Positions 32,958 to 47,305 of a stretch of 64,000 bases of DNA are shown piece by piece. This stretch comes from Marsupella aquatica (taxonomy: Eukaryota > Plantae > Marchantiophyta): NCBI GenBank assembly GCA_973895155.1, contig OZ316898.1:4278480-4342479 (forward strand). Reading direction: 5' to 3'. Below the pieces are notes generated by a model, which saw only the letters and a program-made list of their open reading frames with translations, was not told where the DNA came from and made no database searches. A program made the translations under genes and the position numbers. Each line of letters opens with the position of its first letter. The stretch's first letter is position 1.

Positions 32958-35900
32958 CTACTTGTGTTGCAAATGCAAAACCTGCAAAGTAGCACGGTGT
33001 CTTGAGTAACTCTCCAAAGGAATCACTTTGGTAAAAGCATCAGCCGGGTTGAGTTTTCCATCAATCTTGACTAGCTTAAACATTTTATCAGACACTGCTT
33101 GCCTAATAAAATGGTACCTGATGTCAATGTGCTTCACCCTGCTATCCATCACCTGGTTAATAGCTAGGTGAAGCACACTCTGGCTGTCACAATGAAGAGC
33201 CATTTTTCCATGCTCCAATCCCATCTCAGTGACCAGCTTATCCAACCAAATTGCTTCCTTTGCTGCTTCTGTTGCTGCAACATATTCTGCTTCTGTAGTA
33301 GACTGAGATACACACTTCTGCAAGGTAGATCTCCAACTTATGCATCCTCCTCCAAGAGTAAACACATACCCAGTCGTTGGCCTCCTTGTTTCCAGACAGC
33401 CTCTGTAGTCAAAATCTACATAGCCAACCAATGATTTGGTTTTGTTTGATTTACTATCAAACAACAGACCATAGTCTATTGTGCCTTTAAGATACCTGAG
33501 AATCCATTTCACAGCCTCCCAATGTACCTTCCCTGGATTTGACATGAATCTACTCACTTTGCCCATTGCTAGGGCTAGATCAGGCCTGGTACATGTCATC
33601 AAATACATTAGACTGCCCACTGCCTTCTCATAAGGAACCTTAGTCATCAAGCCTCTCTCCACTGGATCCGTGGGGCAGAAAGCCGATGATAACTTGAAAT
33701 GTGGAGCCAAAGGAATACTTACTGGCTTACAATTTTCCATGTTGAATCTTGCAAGTACCTTTTCAGCATACTTGCCTTGATTCAGCCACAATTGTCCAGT
33801 TTCAAAGTTCCTTGCAATCTCCATACCTAAGATCCTTTTGGCTTTCCCAAGATCCTTCATTCAAAATTCAGAACTCAATTTTTCTTTGAGTTTGTCAACC
33901 TCAGTTTGATCCTTAGCCGCAATCAACATGTCATCCACATAGAGCACCAAAATGAGCAAACCAAACACACCATTCTTGACTGATTTCGTATACACACAAG
34001 GGTCATACACCATCCTAGTGAATCCTTGTGCAAGCATGAAATCATCAAACCGCTTGTTCCACTGTCGAGGAGCTTGCTTCAATCCATACAAGGACTTAAG
34101 CAACCTGCAAACTAAACTCTCTTGGCCCTTCTTCACAAAGCCCAGTGGTTGCCTCATGAAAATTTGTTCTTCCAAGGTGCCATAGAGAAAAGCAGTAACA
34201 ACATCCATTTGATCTAACACCAGATCAAAAAACATAACAAGTTGACACAAAATTCGTATCGTGGAATACTTGGCAACTGGAGAGAAGACCTCATTGTAAT
34301 CCACTCCCTTCTCTTGAGTGAATCCCTTGGCAACAAGCCTTGCCTTGTATATCTTGTCTCCTCCATCTGAAGAGTTGTCCTTCAGCTTGTAAATCCACTT
34401 GCTATCCATCACTTGTTGATCACTTGGCAGCTGCACCAGCTCCCATGTTCTGTTATCACTTAAAGATTGCAACTCCCTCTGCATCGCTGCATTCCATTCA
34501 TCTTTCTCGTCTGAAATGCACGCCTCATGATAAGAAAAAGGTTCTCCTTCTTCCAAGATCAGTGCTCTGTCATCATCTTCAGGTGCAATGTCAACATCAT
34601 CTAACCTTGATAAATCTGTCCATTGTCCATACCTTGTAGGAGCTCGAGTAGTACGTCTCGATTTTCTAGCTGATGATTCTGGTTGATCTTGTTCTGTTGG
34701 TTGAATTTGAGGTATTCCAACAACAACCTGCTCCTCTTGTTCCAATACCGAAACCAGCTCCATTCTCGGAGCACCTCCTTCATTTATGTCATGAAAACTC
34801 TCATGACCAATCTCCCCCACAACATGGTCCAGGATAGGAGATTTACCTTTGTCAGTACGGGAAGCCTGAGCATCCTCCCCCTCCTTTGATGATCTGGATT
34901 CATTAAATGATATATCTCTACTGACAAGCAATGTACAAGCTTTTGGATCCCATAGCCTGTAACCTTTCACACCTGGTTGATAACCAAGAAAAAGACAATT
35001 TTTGGAAGTAGAATCTAGTTTAGATCGATTTTGTTTAGGTGTGAGAGCATATGCATCACTTCCAAAGACTCTCAAAACCTGATAGTCTGCGTGCCGTCCA
35101 TACCTCATTTCAAATGGCATCTTGAAATTGATTGCACTTGAAGGAGAAAGATTTACCAAATAAGTTGCCGTATTTATAGCTTCAGTCCAAAATTCATGCG
35201 GTAAACCTGGTTGGCTCAACATACTCCTCGATCGCTCCAATAGTGTTCGGTTTAGCCGCTCACAAACACCATTCTGTTGAGGAGTATAAATTGTCGTGAG
35301 ATGACGAGTAATCCCTTGCTCTGCACAATATAGTTCAAATTCACTTGAACTGTACTCTCCGCCGTTATCTGATCGCAGATATCTCACCTTGGATCCAGTC
35401 TGATTCTCAATTTGGACTTTCCACTTCTTAAAAGTGCCAAAAACTTCAGACTTGGCGTGTAGAAATGTGATCCACACATACCGTGAGTAATCATCAATGA
35501 ACGTGACATAGTACAATTTTCCATAAAGTGAGGGAGTTGGGGCTGGACCCCACACATCACTATGTACATACTCAAGTATAGCTTTGGTATTGTGAGTTCC
35601 AACACCAAAGGTTCTCCTGTGCTGCTTCCCAAGCACACAGTGTTCACAAAAATCTAGCTTAGTAGATTCCAAATTAGAAAGAAGTCCTTTCCTGCGAAGT
35701 ACTGCCAAACCCGTTTTACTCATGTGTCCTAATCTGCAGTGCCACAACTGAGTCATCTCGCATTGAGATCTAGTTACACTGGCTTCTTCACAAATCACGT
35801 TGCCCTCCAACAGGTATAGATTCTTGTGCCGCTTACCCTTCATGACAACCTTGCCTCCGGTTGATACTTGAAGAATACCATCAGCAGAACTCCACCGACA

Positions 35901-36185
35901 TCCATTTGCTTCCAGCATTCCAAGAGAAATCAAGTTCTTTTTCATGTCAGGTATGTGTCTAACATTACTCACTGTTCGCACAGCTCCATCAAACATCCGA
36001 ATTTTCACGGATCCAATTCCAATAATTTGACAAGGATGATCATTCCCCATCAACACGGAACCGGTTGATACTGAGTAAGAACTAAAAAACTCTTTCATAC
36101 AACAAATATGATAGGTACAGGCACAGTCTAAAATCCATTCATCACCGTTGTTACTGGATGAAATGCAAAGGGCAACATCTTGACT
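32958..36185 (-). pseudogene. pol: Copia pol (protease-integrase-RT-RNase H) interrupted by an in-frame TGA at 33861-33863
   Basis: WILDCACTYH (PR); WHCRLGH...CEHC, SDVWG, RSDNGGE, NGVCER, GVKGY (INT); KARLVAKGF, YVDD (RT); TEAEY, HCDSQS, NPADAFTK (RH). SEF*MKDLG is broken by a stop. Confidence 0.93.
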
Positions 36186-37088
36186 TCACAAGATTTCATC
36201 ATCAAGCAAGTCAATCATATCAACATCAGTGGCTGCGTTCGCTGATGGTTGATGTGTCTGCTTGACTCGACAGTCTCGTTTCATGTGGCCAGACTTGTTA
36301 CATTTCCAACATATAATTGGTTTCCTTTCTAGAGATTTCTCTCTAGACCTGGATCTAGACTTAGATCGAGCCTTCTCCTTGCCTCTATTCTGTGAGGGGT
36401 ACGTTTGTGAAAAGGACCTATTTTCGCTAGTCATCCGCTGTTGAGTCCTCCCGCGGTTCACATTCAATGCACTGCCAGATGAAGATGGTGTCTGGGTATG
36501 ACCCAGTTTCTTCTGTGCATCATCTGACAGCAAAGAGCTTACCACCTCATCATATGAAATAGTTTTGAGGTCTCTATACAAGAGAACCTGCTTCAAACCT
36601 TGATACGATGGGGGTAAGGAGTTGAGAAGAAGAATTGTCTTATCTTCATCTTCCACTCCCTTGCCAAGATTTGATAAATCTACAGCTAGGCTGTCGAATT
36701 CATCCAAATGATCTCGAAGCTTGCCTCCTTCTTTTAGCCTCAAGCTCATCAAGAGAGACTTCTTGTACAACCGATCTGAGGCATCCTCTCGGTAGTACTT
36801 CTCTCTGAGGGCCTTGAATAAGGATACGCAATCCTCGTAGTCGTCCAGCTTCTTAATGATATGCGGCTTCAGATACAGCATAACCGCATTCATAACAATC
36901 ACTTGCTCTTGCCTCCATTTCCTCAACGGGATCTCCTCCTCACTGCTAGACTCCTCCCGAGTCGATAGCAGATGATCTAGGCCCATAGCACGAAGAATTC
37001 TCTTAACCTGCTTCTCCCATAGCAAATAATTTGTGCGCCCATCATATTTTTCCACCTCAAACTTGACACCTCCAAACTTGGATGCCAT
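36186..37088 (-). CDS. gag: Copia Gag with CCHC zinc knuckle
   Basis: ATG at 37088: MASKFGGVKFEVEKYDGRTNYLLW..., LLNSLPPSY, CWKCNKSGHMKRDC. It ends in a TGA in frame with pol. Confidence 0.92.
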   Translation of the reverse strand: MASKFGGVKFEVEKYDGRTNYLLWEKQVKRILRAMGLDHLLSTREESSSEEEIPLRKWRQEQVIVMNAVMLYLKPHIIKKLDDYEDCVSLFKALREKYYREDASDRLYKKSLLMSLRLKEGGKLRDHLDEFDSLAVDLSNLGKGVEDEDKTILLLNSLPPSYQGLKQVLLYRDLKTISYDEVVSSLLSDDAQKKLGHTQTPSSSGSALNVNRGRTQQRMTSENRSFSQTYPSQNRGKEKARSKSRSRSREKSLERKPIICWKCNKSGHMKRDCRVKQTHQPSANAATDVDMIDLLDDEIL

Positions 37089-38944
37089 CGTTGTCCTCCC
37101 AACGTTCTCCACGTGCTATTGTTGTGCTGCTCCCTATATGCTTTTTCCTTCCTTCCTTCTCGTTGACTCAAATCCAAATCACGAAAAAATGTCGTTTTTC
37201 ACAACTTTCCAAAAAACTTGAAACTTGTCACTGCCACGTAGCCCACCAGCCTAGCAAGCCAATGCTGAAATCCAAAATTGAAATCGAGTTCCGACGAAAA
37301 ACTTTTTCACGTTTCGGTCGGGGTGGGTAAAACTCAAAAAAGTCTCCCCCGTTTTGACCACCTCGGGGAATAAGAAAAATTTTAAGTACCACCCGTCGTC
37401 AGAAATGCAAATCGAGTGGTGCACCGCGTTGCTAGCTTCAGTGGCTACGTCCTCGCCAAAAAAGATCCAAAAAAAGTTACCGTTCGGACCTTGGAATCTT
37501 CAACTAAAGGCCGAAAAATAGCTCTCTGTTTTTTCGGAATATTCCTTGGACTGTGCGGCAGGTCTCACAGGGGGCCATTCCCCCTGTCGAAGCGGTTAAA
37601 TTGCCGGGTGACCGGGCCCGGGATGTCGTTTAACCAATGGGAAGAGAGGATGAGAATTAAAATTTGGACCTTAAGGGGGTGCTAAGCCCCTTAGTAAAAA
37701 TACGGCCCTAAAAGGCGCACGAGGCCAGGCGGAGTATGGCATGAGGGAGGCGCAAATACGCGCTCCTATACGCGCGCCAAGAGAGGGCACGAGGCCCTAT
37801 GGAGCATTAATGAGGGGGGTATGCCAAGGGTCGCAAGGCGTGGGAGGATAACCGCTGACGAAGGGGAGGGAGAGGGTAAAATGGCTCGCGAGGGGAGGAA
37901 GGCTGGGCAGGCGAGTGCCAAGTGTGGGCACGAGGCCCTATGCACCGTTAATAGCCCACAAGGGAGGAGGAGGCGCATGGCAAGGCGAGGCGAGAGGGGA
38001 GGTGGGGCACGATGCCCTATGGAGGATTTAAGAGGGGGGGTGAGGTGTCGCAAAGGCAAGAGGGAGGGAGGAGGCGCGATAGGCTCAGTAAGGGGGGGGC
38101 GTATACAGGGCGTATACTCGCGCCCAAGGGGGGGTGGTGGCTTATACAGGGCAGCAGGGGTATACAAGTGCCCCCCAAAACCCCTAAAAGCCAACAAAAA
38201 AAAATTTAAAAAAAATGCCTCAAACAAAAATGCCGGGAACACACCTTGTCGCCGCCTTTTCCAACAAGAAAAGTGATCACCGCCGACGGGAAAAAGTTGC
38301 CAAATTTCACCGGCGCCGTCAGCAGCACCAGAAAGGGAAAAAATTTCTGTCACGTTGCCTTCACTCCGCGTCAAGTGCCAATCCCGGACTCAAAATGACC
38401 GCCTCACCGCGATCTCTCCTTTAAGCCGTAGCACTTCACGAATCTTCCTCCGAGTCGGACGTAACGACAAGAAACCCCGCTTCAGTCAAAAGAAGACTTC
38501 ATAGCCGGTCAGAAACTCAGAACGGCTCTTTTGCTCGGAACGTCGCACTCGCTACACCTTCGATAGTAGACCAGCTACCAAAATGATCAGCTTTGCCCGA
38601 TCTACGATTTGTGCTATAGTATGCGACGCCTCGCGCACCACTAAGCTCACACCGTCGGGAAAACGATCTCAGTTCCCCCCCAAAAGAACCGTCAAAGAAA
38701 ACCGTCGAACACGAATCACAAAAAATCCAGAACGACGGAAACGTGAATTCCTCCGCACCACGAACTCCGTTCAGAGATTTCTTTGCACCGTCGGAAAGCC
38801 CTTGCCCCGATCTATCCGTTGAGCCCAACACCTCCAAGTTCCATGCGATAGATCTCCGTGAAATCCACCAACTCTAACCGCTGGAAAAACCGTCACCAAC
38901 ACGTCACGAAAATTTTGATCACCTCAACATCACCTCCCAAGTTT

Positions 38945-39288: not shown

Positions 39289-41441
39289 ATAATACTATTC
39301 ATGGTGAGGAAAGATACACAATTACAACTGTTTTTTCAACATGGGCTTGGTCAGCTAGCTAATTCAACTTGGTGTGTAACACTACATGGGATATTAGGTT
39401 AACTGCTGTGAAGAGTGTATAACTTCAAGTGGGCCTCCTTGGCCAACATCTACCTTTTCTTTTCTTTTCTTTTCATTTATTTTTTGTGGTTTGATACTTA
39501 TCTTTGGAAATCTGAAGGTGACAAATAGACGATACTGACAACTGTTCTAAACCACAAGATCCAGTTTAAAGGACTCCAGATAACCCACGTTTACTCATTT
39601 CACTTCCAGTACAAACATGTACACAAGAGAGCAAATGGCATTTTCAAGATTTCAACGATCAGTCTCTTTAGTTCACTACAGGTGCCAATCTAGACATCAA
39701 AATAGATATAGGTGAGAGCTTTGTTACTAAAAGCATTGCATCGCCAATCAGCATTTTTAGTGTAAGAGGGTCCTTCCTATCAGACGTATGTGGGAGAGCC
39801 AGCAGCGTAGATCTACTGGTCACCTTGGCAAATTAATAATGGCCAATGAGGAGGAGGGCCTCTTTTATATTAGCAACATGGTTTAAATTTCACTAACGTC
39901 AAGAACCTTGCAAGTTCCACCTTTCTTATGAATATCTACATTACTATCAAATATTGTGGTCGATTGAGTTAAACCCTAAACCCTAAATGGAGTCTCTTGC
40001 TAATGGAAATGAAGGACATCAGAGGAGAGCGACCAGAGCATTTAGGGTTACTTGAGTTAGGGAGAAGAAGCTGGCAGAAAGTAAACAAGATGGGAAACGC
40101 AGGACCACACAAACACAACAATTCTTAGCTACCAAGGCCTGATGCCAAATTCCTAGCAAACTGGCCTTGTTCAAGGTTGACAATAAATGTCTCCAGAGGG
40201 AATACATAAAAAATGTGACCGAGCTTAAAGCCAAATTGCAGACATATAACATCAGCTTAATCAAAACAAGTCACCTGCGGCAATGGGGGGGGGAGTGCAA
40301 ATTGTAAAGAAGTTCTCACTAACTAGAAGGTAAATTGTGAGTAGACAATGAAAAGGTCAAATCAGTTTCTAATGCCCAGAAACATCACAAGACTTCCAAA
40401 TGCTTCAAATGAAGCTCCTCACCCAAATCCTTCGGCTCCAATGCCCCAAACAATCGAATCCATGCACAAGATCCCGCCTTCAGCCCATCTGGTTGATGGT
40501 GACAGGGCCAACGAGTGCTTCATATTCTACGATCACACGTAAAAGAAGCACCGTCTTGGCGGCTTCTGCATAGGCATAGGGCTCGTCGAGTGAGATATTT
40601 TGCTCGACTCCACATACTCCAGAAAGTCTTTACATTCCCGCCAGGTAAAATACATGTTTGGTTCTGTGGCCATCGTTGATTGAGTGGACAGGATACTTCA
40701 AGACAGGACTAACAGAGTAGAATTAATTGCTTCAGGGAAACCTTCCAGCCTTGCACCCTTCCCGTCTCATCCTGTACAGGAGTTAAGTTATTTTATCATT
40801 TTCTAACTTCAGTTTGGCTGTTCTTTGAATTTAGGCTGATGAAAAGCAGAGGTTGGAAACTACTTGAACATTATAGTTTCCCTCTACATACTCCTGCACC
40901 TTAATCCAGACAGTAGATTTGAAAATCAAGTATTTACCAGATGGCCTTCTATCAACGAAGGAAGGTGGAAGTCAAATTGATGCACAATGCAATCAATGGG
41001 ACTCCCACCACAGAACATTTCCTACAATTTTATTAGCACCGGGTGGAAGCTTGCATAAATACAGCACATAAATGGTTGAGATCCAGCAGGGCCAAATGCC
41101 CTCTTGAGATGCATTAAACCGCGGCAGTTCGAAGGCTTGAGCTCACCTTGACTGTAAAGGTTGCTCAATAAAGGCAACAATCTCTTCAGATCGATATATG
41201 TTATTGATGATCAGCTGTGTTGAATTTATGGCAAAGAGGACAGTACCCTGCTGCTTCCTCGAGTCAAAGGTAGTCACCAAGTAACACATCATCAGATACA
41301 TCTGGGTTTGGTTACAAATGAACAACTAGTGCAAATCGTTTTCATGGCTGTGGATAGAATTAAGGGCCCGCTTGATAAGTTAAGTGTCTTGCTGTCTAAC
41401 TTTACGACTCATTAATTTGAGCCCAGACAAACTTGACGTGA

Positions 41442-41621
41442 TCACTTACCCCAGTTGGATGGAGGTCCATCTGCATTAGACTTCCATAGGTATATCATGC
41501 CAATACAAACAGTTGCAACGGTTGCCAAATTGACAATCGTTGTCCAACTCCTCTCCTGGGAGCCATATTTAGAGGATTTGAGGGGTGCATAATCTGACAA
41601 GTCGAGGTATAGTCTCAAAGC
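41442..41621 (-). CDS. Alternative duplicated terminal coding exon 14b of the CBSCBSPB gene
   Basis: It has its own acceptor taggtttttgttgcag|GCTTTGAGACTATACCTCGAC, paralogous to the exon 14a acceptor taggtttttgtcgcag|GGTTTGAGACTATTTCTCGAC, in the same phase 0. It encodes ALRLYLD...WTTIVNLATVATVCIGMIYLWKS... with an intact TM segment. Confidence 0.75.
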   Translation of the reverse strand, partial: ALRLYLDLSDYAPLKSSKYGSQERSWTTIVNLATVATVCIGMIYLWKSNADGPPSNWGK

Positions 41622-41634
41622 CTGCAACAAAAAC

Positions 41635-44600
41635 CTAGTTAGACCTCCTCAGGACATATCCAAGAGTTATACCGACAACTATTACGGTTGCTGCAACTAC
41701 TGCTGTCTGTACATAGACTGGGTTCGAAAGCCAGCTGCTCTCTTTCTCATCATTTTCGTAATGGACTGGTTCGACACTTCTGGAGGGTGCCTTTGCGAGT
41801 TTGGAAGGCGTAGTCGGATAAGTCTTTTTCTGAAGATGCGAGTAGTCGAGAAATAGTCTCAAACCCTGCGACAAAAACCTATTAGCCCCTTAATGAAAAG
41901 AAAAAACTGTAACAATAGACCTGGCAAATGCCTCAAACCATCTCCAGCTTCCAAATGCACTCCATTCGAAGTTCTACCACGAACAGGGAGACAACCCATC
42001 CTGAACAATTCCCGCAGGCTGAAGTAACTCCATAAGCTGCAAAAAATAGCCTGGACTCTAGTCTAGTCAACATGCCAACATTTCTGCCACCAAAACATCT
42101 TGATAGACTCACCTTCCAGCCAGATATCCGTGCAAAGTTGACGGCTGCAATCAGATCACTATCACTTCCCAATAGAACCCGATCTCCTTCATCATCTTCG
42201 TACTGTACACGTCCACAAACCATTTTCAATCTCAATTTCGGGAAATCGTGTGTCCATAGCATGCTCCCAATGTTCCAAGATGCTAGTTTTACAATCAATC
42301 CTAATTGCTCCACATCAATCTCCCAATACATTATCAGCCTTGCTTAGCATGTCTGCTAGCTGGCTCTGAAAGTAAAGCTAAGCCAGAGACAGAATTTGCA
42401 GAAGTGCTTTACTGGTAAATCCAAAATTGTTGTCAAGCAGGGACAAGATACCATGATATGAGGAAGTTGTGTGACATCAACATCATCTCCAACACGTGTT
42501 ACTATTGTTGAAATAAGTTCTGTGAGGCTTTCTGTCCCTGTTCCACAACAGTAGGCAACCACAGGATTTACAGCCCAATTCCTTAAGCGTGCATAGTTCA
42601 AGTGTGGAAAAATAAATGTTTCGAGTATATAGACATACCACACAATTTGAAAATCCATGACAGTAAGTTTGCAGGAATGGCTCGTCCCCGCAAACTTTTT
42701 AGAAGTAATATTGAAACCTGAATTATCATGAAGGAGGTTCCTTCAGCGACCTAGTAGTAAGACAGTTTCCGGGACAATACTGCTGCTCAAAACTTACCAC
42801 AATTGAAACGATGCACACGACCCTTCCGATCCTCTAATTTGAAGGAGAAGGTAGTTCCTAGACCCATCGGTGGGTACTGTTGTCTTCCAGCTTCTGAGCC
42901 ATACACTTCCGATGCGGCAAGCCTCCCAGAATTGTCACTGTGACATAGGCCACATTGACCAACTGAACATTAGTAGTGTTCAGAGCAGCTCCTTTGGATC
43001 GTACACTAATAACATGTCAAGGAGACAACAACCAAAGAGGCTGAAATTTGTGCCTTTCAATTTTAATTGAGTATTTATGATTTCATCAAACATAGTATAT
43101 GATGGCCGTCTGAAGTGCATCCATTGCAAACCCCACTGCTGGAAACAGTATCTTTCACAACTGACCTACGGGTGTCATCATCATCTTCCCCTGGCTCCAA
43201 CGCAAGAGCTGAATCCCAAAATTTCTGAAGCATTGTACCTCCCACATCACCAGAAGCACCGTTTTGATTGTTTCCAACCTACACAGAACATCGTACTTGA
43301 ATTAATATTTCAGTTTGTAAACGCAGGGCACAATTAAAATTGGAAGCAACTGCATTCAAAGATAATGTGCAACCTGATTCTGTAGATATAAATCAATCTT
43401 TTCGAAATTGAGGCAAAAGCAATCGCTACCAGAACAGTCATATCATTAATTTTGATAGATCTCACGCAAAGGAACAAGTTTTCTTCTAGATAGGATTTGG
43501 GGACTGTGCAAGAAAACGTACAGTGGCAACAGCTCCATGTGTAAGCTGCAAAACATCCAGGCAGGCCACCACAAAACCATCTGCACGCAACCCAAAACAT
43601 TACACCACATACTCACACAAAAAGCTAAGGACATGCCGTACGAAGAGAAAGCTCAACAGACACTCACCCTGATCAAGAACTGGTAGATGCAGAAATCTTC
43701 CATCGTGCATTGTGTGCAGCGCATCCACAATAGTTGTTTCTAAAGAGGCACACTCCGGATTGGGAGTCATCACCTGGATTTGAAAACATCGTCAATTCCC
43801 TATCACAAATCTAGATGACAGGAAGTAAAATCTAAGCAAAAGGCTTCATTTGAACACCTCGGTCAGCTTCGTACAAAACGCTTACACGATACCTTCTCCA
43901 CTGGTGTTGACTCGGGTGGCAGTCCCATTGCAACAACTCGCATTAACACATCTTTTGAACTGCAGCAGAAATGCAAAACAAAAGTAAATGTCAACTTTGA
44001 TGAAGATGAAGACTAATAATGCTAAGCAAGTTCAGAAAAGTTGGATGTTTACTCTGTTTGATTGGTAATGTGATATAATAATCCACTTGGCATAATAGCG
44101 ATCCAAAAGTCCCAAACCTATGAACAAAGGACTGTAGAAGGCAGCTCCTACGTGAGAATGCCCTGAGGCTTGTTTGCTGACGTCACAATAACAGAGTTGA
44201 CTCGCAAATCGCGCATCTTCTTTGTTGCTGAATACACAGTATCAGATAGGGAGAGAGTTGCAACTCTGCAAAGTAGACAAGTAACCACAGAGGCATAAGA
44301 GCAGTAACCAAAATCAACAACCTCTTTCAAAACTAAAAATATCGAAGAGACCACACCCTGACAATCTACAGGCAGATCTACCCTTCACGCAGTAACACAG
44401 TAAAAAATGATAAATCGTCTTTCAAAACAATTATGCAAGAATGAGCGCGAAAAATGACCTACTTGTTCGCTTCTGTTAACAGGGAGCCTAATGTAGGCCG
44501 AAACATCCGCTCTCGTAAAGTCTCAATAAAGCTTGAAGGAGCTGTCCAAGACCATGCATAACTGTAGGGATTAGAATTTTTATTTTATTTTATTTTAGTT

Positions 44601-47305
44601 TTTATATTTTGGTTGTTGGTGATATCTATATCATCTAAAAAGACCCGCTCAGCTCCAACAACAGCAACTGCATCAGGTATTCACTGACCTGCTAGATTGT
44701 TGCCCCATTGACGTTCAACACCTTCAACTGCAGCTGCAATGGCATTGCCTTTTTCTGCAGCCCTCTCCATACGTGCGATTGCATCATAAAGGCACTTTGT
44801 GATGTCGAGGAGAGCAACCACCTCACCATTTTCAACTACAGGAAGATGCCGAAACTTGCCTGCAGAAGATGTGGTTATTCGGCAGCTATAACGCAGTCGT
44901 CAATATAGTAAAGACACAACCTTCCATTCGCAGTACGATACTAAAAGCTTGTGAATATCTAAAACAGGGAACCCACAATGAAACTGAGCAAGCAGAATGG
45001 AACCCTAATTACCTTGAACCATTTTTTGAAGGGCGTCCACTGCCAAGGTGTCTCCCATAACAAAAATCGGATTTCTAGTCATAACTTTGGACACTGAGGT
45101 CTCTTCAGGTTTGAGACCCTCGGCAATAACCCTGGTAGCCACATCCTGCAATAGAAAAGATAATTAAATCAACGGTCAAAAATAAGTAGATCGACTCATA
45201 GGAACTAAACTTTGGCCACTGGCAAATGTAAAACTTGGAAGGCATAATTTAATTATCAACTATACAAGAAATTCCAGTTCGAGTTTCCGCACCTTATCTG
45301 TGATGATACCACACAGCAAAGCACTGGCATCAGTGAGTAAAGCAGCATCTACTCTTCTTGTAGCCATCCGACGGCATGCATCTGCAACAGTTGTCCCATC
45401 TGGGATAGTGAGAGCCTTAGATAAGCGCAATCTTTTCACTGTCCGCTCCCCTGGCGTCCTGTGGAATCAAAATTAATTATGAGGAGAATTCTAGTAATAT
45501 GAAACTAGAGATGAACCAAGAACATCAGAAATAACGAGAACATCAAGGTCAATCTAAATCCAAATCGCCACATGGCTCGGATTTAATTTCCCAGGGGAGA
45601 ACGTATAAATGCGTTTTTATACCACAAATTCCAACCAGAGAGTGACGAAACTGAATGAAATAGAAACAGAAAGACCAGTTGGGACAAATATTTGCCAATA
45701 ATTTTTATATAGCTTCCAAAAGTCCAGACCTAGGCAAGAGTAGTAAGACCCGTACCCTCTCTGGTCTCCAAGTGCTACTGAGAGCACAGCCTGGAATTAA
45801 ACTGGTGAATAGATACTGGGATCAAAGAAACTGCCAAAATAAATTCAAGGAAGGAAGGAACTCTTTTATCTTCAAATAGGTCAATACTAAACCTATATAG
45901 TAGGATAGGCTTGTCTCCCTGGATGCCAGAGCCGTCTTCTTGATAAGATTTGAACTCAAGAAACAATAATTTATAATTTTCCCAAGGAATCTAAAAGTTA
46001 TTTCTCCCTTTGTCGACGTAATACAATTGTGTCGCGGAAGCAAGAGACTACGATGGGACTCCCACCATTCTACTGAAAAAAAAGTTCAATAGCTGATGCA
46101 CCCTTAAGCCGGTACTGAACCGTAGATAGTATGACCTAGAAAGGTAGGGTTTTCTGTGTGTATGTGAGATGAAGATACAAGGATCTCTTAGTTCTGTGGA
46201 AAGCGAATGCCTTTTACACCCTAAATAATTATACACACAAGTACCTCATAAAGGCTGAGGCCCTCTTGAGCTGCTCTTGTAAGGCGATCAAGGTTCCTTG
46301 TCTCAATCGCCATTTTCCTTTTCTACTTCTGCGGGAAAAACTTCTGCTCCCCTCGTGCAACATTCTATTGAAGAAATACGCCCTGCATCATTGATGCTGT
46401 AGAGCGTGGGGCTTGATACCTTTTTGAGGCATTCGTACTTTACTAAGGAAGTCACCTATGTTTTCAGAGATTAATTAGCTTTTCAGTTTGTGTTGAGTCT
46501 ATGTTTTTTCAATTAGGTAATTACTATATAGCTTCTGGTTTAAGCTTCCATAACACAACGAAATCTGATGGTCCCTTTGCTCCTCTTATATTAAGTAGTG
46601 GGCCATAAAGTACAACATAAAAACGACCTGCCCTACTTTGCAAATCCCATGACAGGGTCATCTCCCTCTTATAAAATTAGTATTCGCGACAATGCCCCAG
46701 CGCATTGGCTGCTACAGTCGGCAGAATCACCAATCATCTCTAACTATGGGAAGGGTTTCCAATGCTCACAACAAAACCAAAACACAAAGACACAGAATAA
46801 AGAAATCAAGTTAAAGAATACAATAAAGATGGCCAAGAATTGCTTCCGCTAGCCTGAACAACTTGACCAATAAGCATTCCAGACGCCCACCAAATGGTTA
46901 CATCCGACAAATGGAAAGCAGACCAAGAAAGGAAGATTGAGATGATTGACGACTTGAATCTTGGGACTAGGATTTTGGTTCCAAATCTGATCGTTGCTCG
47001 TAACAACTCTGTTATCACTCAGTCAAGTTCATGGCAGATGTTGGTGTTTCTGACATGGTATGTGGGTATCCTTTACCCTAATCTTAACCAACAGCAGAAT
47101 CAGGATCCGAAGAAGAAGAAGAACGAAGGAACGAAGACGATGGAAGCTGAGATAAATCTTACGCTGGCTTTCCGCCTGATCTGCGTGCCCCACCGCTTTC
47201 AGACGGCGTTTTCTTTCTTGATCCCCCACTGCGTTTCGGTGTCGCAGTTTTTCCCTGCCGTTTTCCCCCTGCTGCAGCTGCCGCTGCAGATCCCGTGCTA
47301 CTCAT
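41635..47305 (-). CDS. CBSCBSPB: CBS-domain/PB1/C-terminal TM protein (CBSCBSPB family), isoform with terminal exon 14a, ~565 aa
   Basis: Exons 47305-47163, 45458-45293, 45145-45013, 44859-44689, 44541-44463, 44265-44152, 43959-43893, 43773-43668, 43580-43522, 43278-43166, 42937-42798, 42537-42452, 42202-42113, 41865-41635 splice in phase. Motifs: GERTVKRLRLSKALTIP, GKFRHLPVVENGEV, FSFKLEDRKGRVHRF, YEDDEGDRVLL (PB1) and a hydrophobic tail. Confidence 0.94.

Follow-up and report, generated by a model that had tools for sequence, protein, structure and literature searches.

A tandemly duplicated last exon may give a liverwort CBS-PB1 protein two alternative membrane tail anchors

We analysed a stretch of 64,000 nucleotides from the liverwort Marsupella aquatica (contig OZ316898.1), referred to below as the window; all coordinates are window positions unless a contig is named. 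The minus strand of the window carries, from about 47305 to 41201, an intron-rich gene that is the liverwort orthologue of the plant CBSCBSPB proteins. Exon 13 of this gene is followed by two paralogous exons, 14a and 14b, each with its own acceptor and each encoding the last strand of the PB1 domain and a hydrophobic helix. The anchor exon was duplicated, and we consider it probable that the two splicing routes, 13 to 14a and 13 to 14b to a further exon 15, give two proteins with different membrane anchors.

Tandem acceptors and the two anchor exons

Exon 13 (42202-42113, on the minus strand like all features of the gene) ends in phase 0 with ..ARISGWK/gtgagt, where the slash marks the splice site. 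The preliminary description of this DNA placed two phase-0-compatible acceptors behind it, and the sequence bears this out, at 41866/41865 for 14a and at 41622/41621 for 14b. If the 14a acceptor is used, intron 13 measures 247 nt (41866-42112). Exon 14a (41635-41865) is the canonical terminal exon. It comprises the last PB1 strand, a linker, a hydrophobic helix, RRSN and a TAG stop codon at 41637-41635, and its translation runs GLRLFLD...YVLRRSN. Exon 14b (41450-41621) encodes the last PB1 strand as ALRLYLD, followed by a linker shorter than that of 14a, a second hydrophobic helix and KSNADGPPSNW, and has the conserved donor TGGG/GTAAG at its end. The open 14b frame is translated as ALRLYLD...WKSNADGPPSNWGK up to a stop codon, and its part after the second hydrophobic helix reads KSNADGPPSNWGK.

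The two exons are introduced by a 38-nt direct repeat (41881-41844 and 41637-41600), in which 34 of 38 positions are identical and which has a local score of 56, compared with 17.1 +/- 2.2 in shuffled sequences. The first copy (41844-41881) consists of the 3' splice module of 14a, with a CTAAT-like branch site, a T-rich tract and CAG, and of the first seven codons, GLRLFLD. The second copy (41600-41637) starts with the TAG of 14a, continues through a 13-nt spacer that includes the acceptor (41634-41622) and closes with the first seven codons of 14b. It was therefore correctly proposed that the repeated acceptor module opens with the stop codon of 14a and that the exons lie 13 nt apart. The hexanucleotide TCTAAC at 41643-41638, just upstream of the second copy, fits the branch-site consensus.

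Past the 38-nt repeat no DNA-level alignment of 14a with 14b is obtained, and past the first seven residues the similarity of the single sequences falls short of significance, with p values of 0.06 for protein and 0.1 for DNA. The linkers and tails had been described as fully diverged. This is true of the DNA past the repeat, but the profiles are still collinear: a profile-profile comparison of six 14a with six 14b sequences matched along the whole exon (P=3.2e-4). In our alignment A5, both exons share GL[RK]L.LD at the start and a Trp that hardly varies ahead of the helix, which is followed by Y-x-L-basic-S-N.

The position of the exon boundary within the fold is given by the Calypogeia fissa orthologue P0203 (565 aa), which has four CBS stretches. 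Its Pfam PB1 match (residues 411-494) extends into exon 14, whose first residue is 488. An AlphaFold2 model of the C. fissa orthologue, calculated with 37 homologues, shows a beta-grasp fold. It places the last PB1 strand at 489-494 and a terminal helix at 538-564, with a disordered linker (500-537) between them. The first seven residues of 14a and of 14b are thus predicted to form the strand that completes the PB1 fold, in agreement with the earlier claim that both exons retain it.

Two other routes into 14b were considered. The 14b frame is offset from the 14a frame by 16 nt, which rules out stop-codon read-through from 14a to 14b. A donor inside 14a joined to the 14b acceptor is unlikely, as the only phase-0 GT candidate, ACC/GTAATA, is not conserved in C. 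fissa.

Conservation and selection

A search with the 14b peptide returned one protein, the 67-aa 'unnamed protein product' CAM6092271.1 of C. fissa (P0001). Its gene stands directly after the 565-aa CBS/PB1 gene on a 24-Mb contig (CBCUJL010000007.1, locus L001), and the whole of this locus is 70-79% identical to the window. The 14a peptide returned three open reading frames (ORFs), genomic or intron-retaining. Four further sequence types came from the contigs, namely a second C. fissa copy (L010), identical Logan contigs from three runs (L005, L006 and L007) and two JGI contigs (L008 and L009). The comparison set thus held six sequences, namely the window, the two C. fissa copies and three other relatives. 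The window tail is about 80% identical to each C. fissa copy. Exons 14b and 15 are intact in all six sequences, each of which keeps TCTAACTAG, the 13-nt spacer with its acceptor, the open 14b frame, the helix and the donor TGGG/GTAAG. A more distant, liverwort-like Logan contig (SRR33208215, L003:3249-3437) has a single exon 14 ending in ..FLRRSNS and a stop, and the next 1.1 kb of its sequence contain neither 14b nor exon 15. This hints, and no more, that the duplication is confined to a Calypogeia-containing group, since the contig could be a paralogue.

Between the window and C. fissa, sequence identity is 77% in intron 13, which also has many indels, 88% in exon 14a, 92.5% in exon 14b, 79% in the 14b-15 intron and 98% in exon 15. 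Pairwise dN/dS ratios range from 0.10 to 0.26 for 14a and from 0.12 to 0.34 for 14b, and the divergence of the 14b-15 intron is neutral-like (Jukes-Cantor distances of 0.24-0.51). Codon-model likelihood-ratio tests against omega=1 gave omega values of 0.17 for 14a (p=1e-14), 0.26 for 14b (p=1.6e-6) and 0.18 for exon 15 (p=0.0045). The variable sites of 14b are distributed as 11/7/23 over codon positions 1/2/3. Its indels are of 3 or 9 nt and all in frame, whereas those of the flanking 14b-15 intron have many lengths that are not multiples of three. All five changes in the GYCPLCHK segment of exon 15 fall at third positions. Exons 14a, 14b and 15 are under purifying selection in the frames given above. 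Selection on both anchor exons had been proposed from the window alone, and a frameshifted or missing 14b in close relatives had been named beforehand as the finding that would speak against it; 14b proved intact in every relative found, and both omega values are well below one.

The window copy of 14b has Ala in place of Gly as its first codon and a TGA after the donor, as might be expected of a decaying duplicate that has fallen out of use in this genome. However, the window retains an intact frame, helix, acceptor, donor and exon 15, and its branches are short in the codon trees. Decay of 14b is very unlikely.

Across five independent sequences, 11 of the 13 bases preceding the 14b acceptor do not vary, compared with 7 of 13 for 14a. 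The retained splice signals had been taken as a sign of selection. Selection accounts for the near-identity of the two acceptor regions only in part; another part is due to concerted evolution, as seen from lineage-specific synonymous states that the 5' ends of both exons share: L005 has CTG at codon 4 in both 14a and 14b, L009 has CTT TTT in both, and the other lineages have CTA. This pattern points to gene conversion over short tracts of the two modules, a process that would keep two competing acceptors alike. Because the 5' ends evolve in concert, the identity of the acceptor regions is no measure of the age of the duplication.

Exon 15 and the end of the 14b tail

Exon 14b had been described as a terminal exon, with a hydrophobic helix, a longer near-neutral tail and an SNWG(K) end before the stop. 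The helix and the near-neutral character of the tail stand. The end does not: 14b is probably followed by an intron of about 200 nt and by exon 15. The candidate GT..AG intron (41251-41449) measures 199 nt, and 192-236 nt in the relatives, and is annotated as an intron in C. fissa. The splice annotated there, TGG G/gtaag ... agcag/CA, continues the 14b frame. Candidate exon 15 (41201-41250, 50 nt) completes the split Ala codon and then encodes GYCPLCHKFNTADHQ before a TAA stop. Its consensus is A-GYCPLCHK[FY][NS].[AG]D[HR]Q, and the TAA is conserved in all six sequences.

If 14b were nevertheless terminal, it would end by reading through the donor (..SNWGK and a stop in the window genome), without exon 15. 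The TGA that lies two codons past the donor position in the window is compatible with this, as is the RNA-like contig L008, which carries the 14b-15 intron unspliced. However, the GK end is specific to the window genome, and at this position the relatives conserve the GTAAG donor. Past the donor, the sequences and reading frames of the relatives diverge completely, giving read-through ends as different as K followed by two stops, KRSCHFF.., KYHATF.. and KLSRQVYTGSIE followed by a stop, until a 50-nt block is conserved some 200 nt further on. Since the donor, exon 15 and its stop codon are conserved and selected, a terminal 14b is unlikely.

With exon 15 joined to 14b, the predicted tail consists of the helix and 27 near-neutral residues that include a CxxC motif. 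The peptide SNWAGYCPLCHK would be expected of the 14b+15 product and not of a reading without exon 15. The acceptor of exon 15 is a tandem CAGCAG at 41251-41247, of the NAGNAG type; use of its second AG would drop one Ala codon and preserve the frame.

Splicing of exon 13 to exon 14b

The frame of 14b is offset from that of 14a, 14b has no conserved ATG, and its PB1-strand codons are conserved. To be translated in the selected frame, 14b would thus have to be spliced to exon 13, which ends in phase 0. Judging from the sequence comparison, this splice appears to be the only explanation for selection on 14b. An ATG before the 14b helix occurs only in the two C. fissa copies. Four other lineages have TTG there, and L009 has no Met anywhere in 14b, so that the conserved start codon of an independent small ORF gene is lacking. 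The RNA-like contig L008, in which introns 11 and 12 are precisely removed, continues through intron 13, 14a, 14b, the 14b-15 intron and exon 15. Therefore, 14a, 14b and exon 15 belong to one transcription unit with exons 11-13. At its 3' end the gene carries two candidate alternative exons, each predicted to encode an anchor.

In C. fissa (L001:10001-10415) the annotated 67-aa gene is built from the greater part of 14b and from exon 15, with the same intron between them. This model raises the possibility that 14b and 15 constitute an independent small gene, a spun-off anchor duplicate for a tail-anchored micro-protein of about 60-70 aa (CAM6092271.1), and the selection tests alone are silent on what lies upstream of 14b. 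However, the ATG of the model is not shared by the other lineages, as described above. The open frame, the acceptor and the codons upstream of this ATG, which encode the PB1 strand, are conserved. Moreover, the model starts 35 nt past the stop of the upstream gene, which leaves no room for a promoter, and at the second C. fissa locus the same sequence carries no such model. We regard an independent gene as improbable. With an ATG confined to one lineage and no corresponding model at the paralogous locus L010, CAM6092271.1 is probably a split annotation of the alternative 3' end of the neighbouring CBS-PB1 gene, and is flagged here as a likely mis-annotation.

Several observations weigh against splicing to 14b. 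RNA-like contigs from two relatives (L008:1-1378 and L004:1-2206; JGI 3300056957 and 3300056954) have their upstream introns removed and intron 13 retained, and L008 also retains the 14b-15 intron. The tract upstream of the exon-15 acceptor is weak and purine-rich. The C. fissa annotators made 14b and 15 into a 67-aa gene of their own at one locus and left them unannotated at the other. If the 14b-15 intron is spliced in 14a-type mRNAs, an exon junction follows the 14a stop at a distance of about 190 nt, an arrangement prone to nonsense-mediated decay (NMD). Finally, no 13-14b or 14b-15 junction was found in word searches with 14b and 14a, among the best 120 of 2124 matches to alignment A5, or in the contigs. 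The same searches yielded no contig with the canonical 13-14a junction either, which is seen only in the C. fissa annotation (P0203). The junction searches therefore have little power and do not count as evidence against use of 14b; the blank reflects poor transcript coverage of the clade. A degenerate junction pattern run against metagenome contigs gave two chance matches only, one bacterial and thioredoxin-like, the other AT-rich. Intron 13 may be slowly spliced, detained or regulated at the point where the acceptors compete.

The retention of introns in L008 and L004 would also agree with a purely untranslated role, in which 14b and exon 15 are elements of the 3' untranslated region (UTR) of the 14a mRNA, for instance an NMD-switch intron, and their coding-like signal is incidental. 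Indeed, in every mRNA of the 14a type, 14b is by its position part of the 3' UTR, and a spliced intron at such a distance past the stop is NMD-prone. This is difficult to reconcile with the third-position bias of 14b (11/7/23), with omega below one in two exons whose frames are linked by the proposed splice, with indels that are exclusively in frame, and with the preservation of the helix and of the family landmarks W...Y-L-basic. An untranslated role is accordingly given little credence, and we rate it as very unlikely.

The two membrane tails

Besides the C-terminal segment, the hydrophobic peaks of P0203 lie only in the folded CBS cores. Both 14a and 14b+15 provide a single hydrophobic helix near the C-terminus, as is characteristic of tail anchors. 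The C-terminal segment fits a tail-anchored topology, which would imply post-translational membrane insertion with the N-terminus in the cytosol. An intact helix had been noted in each exon, and the best 19-residue grand average of hydropathy (GRAVY) is indeed 2.26 for 14a and 1.77 for 14b+15. The 14a tail ends four residues after the helix, with RRSN and a net charge of +2. The 14b+15 tail continues for 27 residues, with a net charge of 0, two His and the CPLC motif. The features known to steer tail anchors differ between the two tails; in our view, the destinations are not predictable from them.

In plants, the signal that directs tail anchors to the outer mitochondrial membrane is a dibasic motif, -R-R/K/H-X, where X is not E (PMC4154396). 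The RRSN of 14a, four residues after the helix, fits this motif, as do most tails of the family. The 14b+15 tail does not, since it has a single K followed by D, extends over 27 residues and has no net charge.

Alternatively spliced tail anchors are already known in animals, from the TA1 and TA2 anchors of SLMAP (PMC2712456) and the isoforms of DMPK (PMC2778554). In these cases, hydrophobicity and flanking residues set targeting to the endoplasmic reticulum or to mitochondria. The liverwort locus resembles these systems in that one gene has candidate alternative 3' exons, each with a different predicted C-terminal anchor. It differs in kingdom and protein family, and its two anchors, known from sequence alone, are paralogues in tandem, each with its own copy of the splice module. 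The liverwort locus would add a plant CBS-PB1 candidate to the animal examples.

The C-terminal anchor that is universal in the family is hardly mentioned in the literature searched, in which we found no paper that connects CBS-PB1 proteins with tail anchoring. A tag fused to the C-terminus should hide a tail anchor. Such a tag was used in at least one localisation study, that of rice CBSCBSPB4 with C-terminal green fluorescent protein (PMC5817877).

Gene body and family

Exons 1-13 (42113-47305) encode a CBSCBSPB-type body with four CBS motifs and most of PB1. They were mapped by Pfam matches and by tblastn with Nicotiana tabacum CBSCBSPB1 (P0014) and the C. fissa orthologues P0203 and P0274. 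The window protein was compared exon by exon, and the natural sequences L008:1-255 and P0203 were used alongside the exons. At the exon level, Pfam CBS matched on four window exons and Pfam PB1 on exon 13. The naturally spliced contig L008:1-255 confirms the junctions 11/12/13, and its exons 11-13 match the PB1 profile over positions 1-70 of 84. Over all exons, identity to N. tabacum CBSCBSPB1 is 66%, and identity to named CBSCBSPB1/5 proteins ranges from 59 to 66%. Four CBS motifs in two Bateman pairs, a C-terminal PB1 domain and full-length similarity place the protein in the CBSCBSPB family. Members of this family occur in all land plants and have been linked to stress tolerance; we know of no mechanism for them.

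Family tails were collected by a cluster-representative search with one CBS exon (150 family representatives) and by a search with alignment A5 (best 120 of 2124 matches). Among the matches listed, the tails of about 100 full-length angiosperm homologues consist of a hydrophobic helix and a few terminal residues of basic character, such as LRRSGN, LKRSGN or LRRAGN. Distant multidomain relatives end in the same way, and the tail consensus is L[RK][RK][SA]G[NE] followed by the stop. Because both distant and angiosperm homologues end in a 14a-type tail, 14a is the ancestral, canonical terminal exon. An interim idea, that the 14a stop had been made by the duplication junction and that 14b+15 was ancestral, is ruled out by the same tails. 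No 14b-like tail was present among the 150 representatives, nor was a 14b tail among the best 120 of 2124 matches to A5, an alignment that includes 14b sequences. The liverwort protein shares with CBSCBSPB1-5 of Arabidopsis and rice and with P0014 the two CBS pairs, PB1, the linker, the C-terminal hydrophobic helix and the short dibasic end. In contrast, none of the listed homologues has a second anchor exon or a 14b-like tail.

Origin and possible function

We propose that the 3' splice module and the terminal tail-anchor exon were duplicated in tandem in an ancestor of the Calypogeia-containing liverwort group. The duplicated unit would have extended from the branch site to ...TCTAAC, and its boundary may have been helped by the resemblance of the intron sequence CTAATAGG to the exon-end sequence CTAACTAGG. 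The upstream copy, 14a, would have kept the family end of hydrophobic helix, dibasic RRSN and stop. The downstream copy, 14b, starting 13 nt past the 14a stop, would have lost the homologous stop, so that KSN now runs on into ADG, with a donor and exon 15 behind it. The phase-0 donor of exon 13 could then pair with either acceptor. Splicing of 13 to 14a would give the canonical protein. Splicing of 13 to 14b to 15 would give the same CBS-PB1 body with PB1 closed by a paralogous strand. The linker of this form would be shorter and its helix less hydrophobic than in the canonical protein, and a net-neutral CxxC segment of 27 residues would follow. We infer that the 13-14b and 14b-15 splices occur, that both proteins are tail-anchored, and that they would reach different membranes or encounter different lumenal or intermembrane-space chemistry.

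A more specific proposal, put forward tentatively and with some doubt, is that a putative adenylate sensor is sent to two organelle membranes by paralogous anchor exons, the derived anchor exposing its CxxC motif in the lumen or intermembrane space. This segment would then offer a redox- or metal-sensitive handle that is impossible for the canonical form, which stops four residues after the helix. Alternatively spliced tail anchors would also have a conserved example in plants, and the CBSCBSPB family would be shown to act at membranes. One sensor body with two anchors kept distinct by selection would point to membrane location as central to function. In this respect the locus is a natural experiment, its two short tails being directly testable.

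Neighbourhood of the gene

Three consecutive long ORFs of 308, 745 and 300 aa lie on the minus strand at 32958-37112, and their translations are gag-like, with a zinc knuckle, an integrase and reverse-transcriptase-like sequence. This region looks like a nearly intact long terminal repeat (LTR) retrotransposon of the Ty1/copia type, about 4 kb downstream of the CBS-PB1 gene. Next to it, the segment 37766-38374 is G+C-rich and contains, on both strands, long overlapping ORFs whose low-complexity translations are rich in proline and arginine. This segment may represent an LTR or a region of simple repeats.

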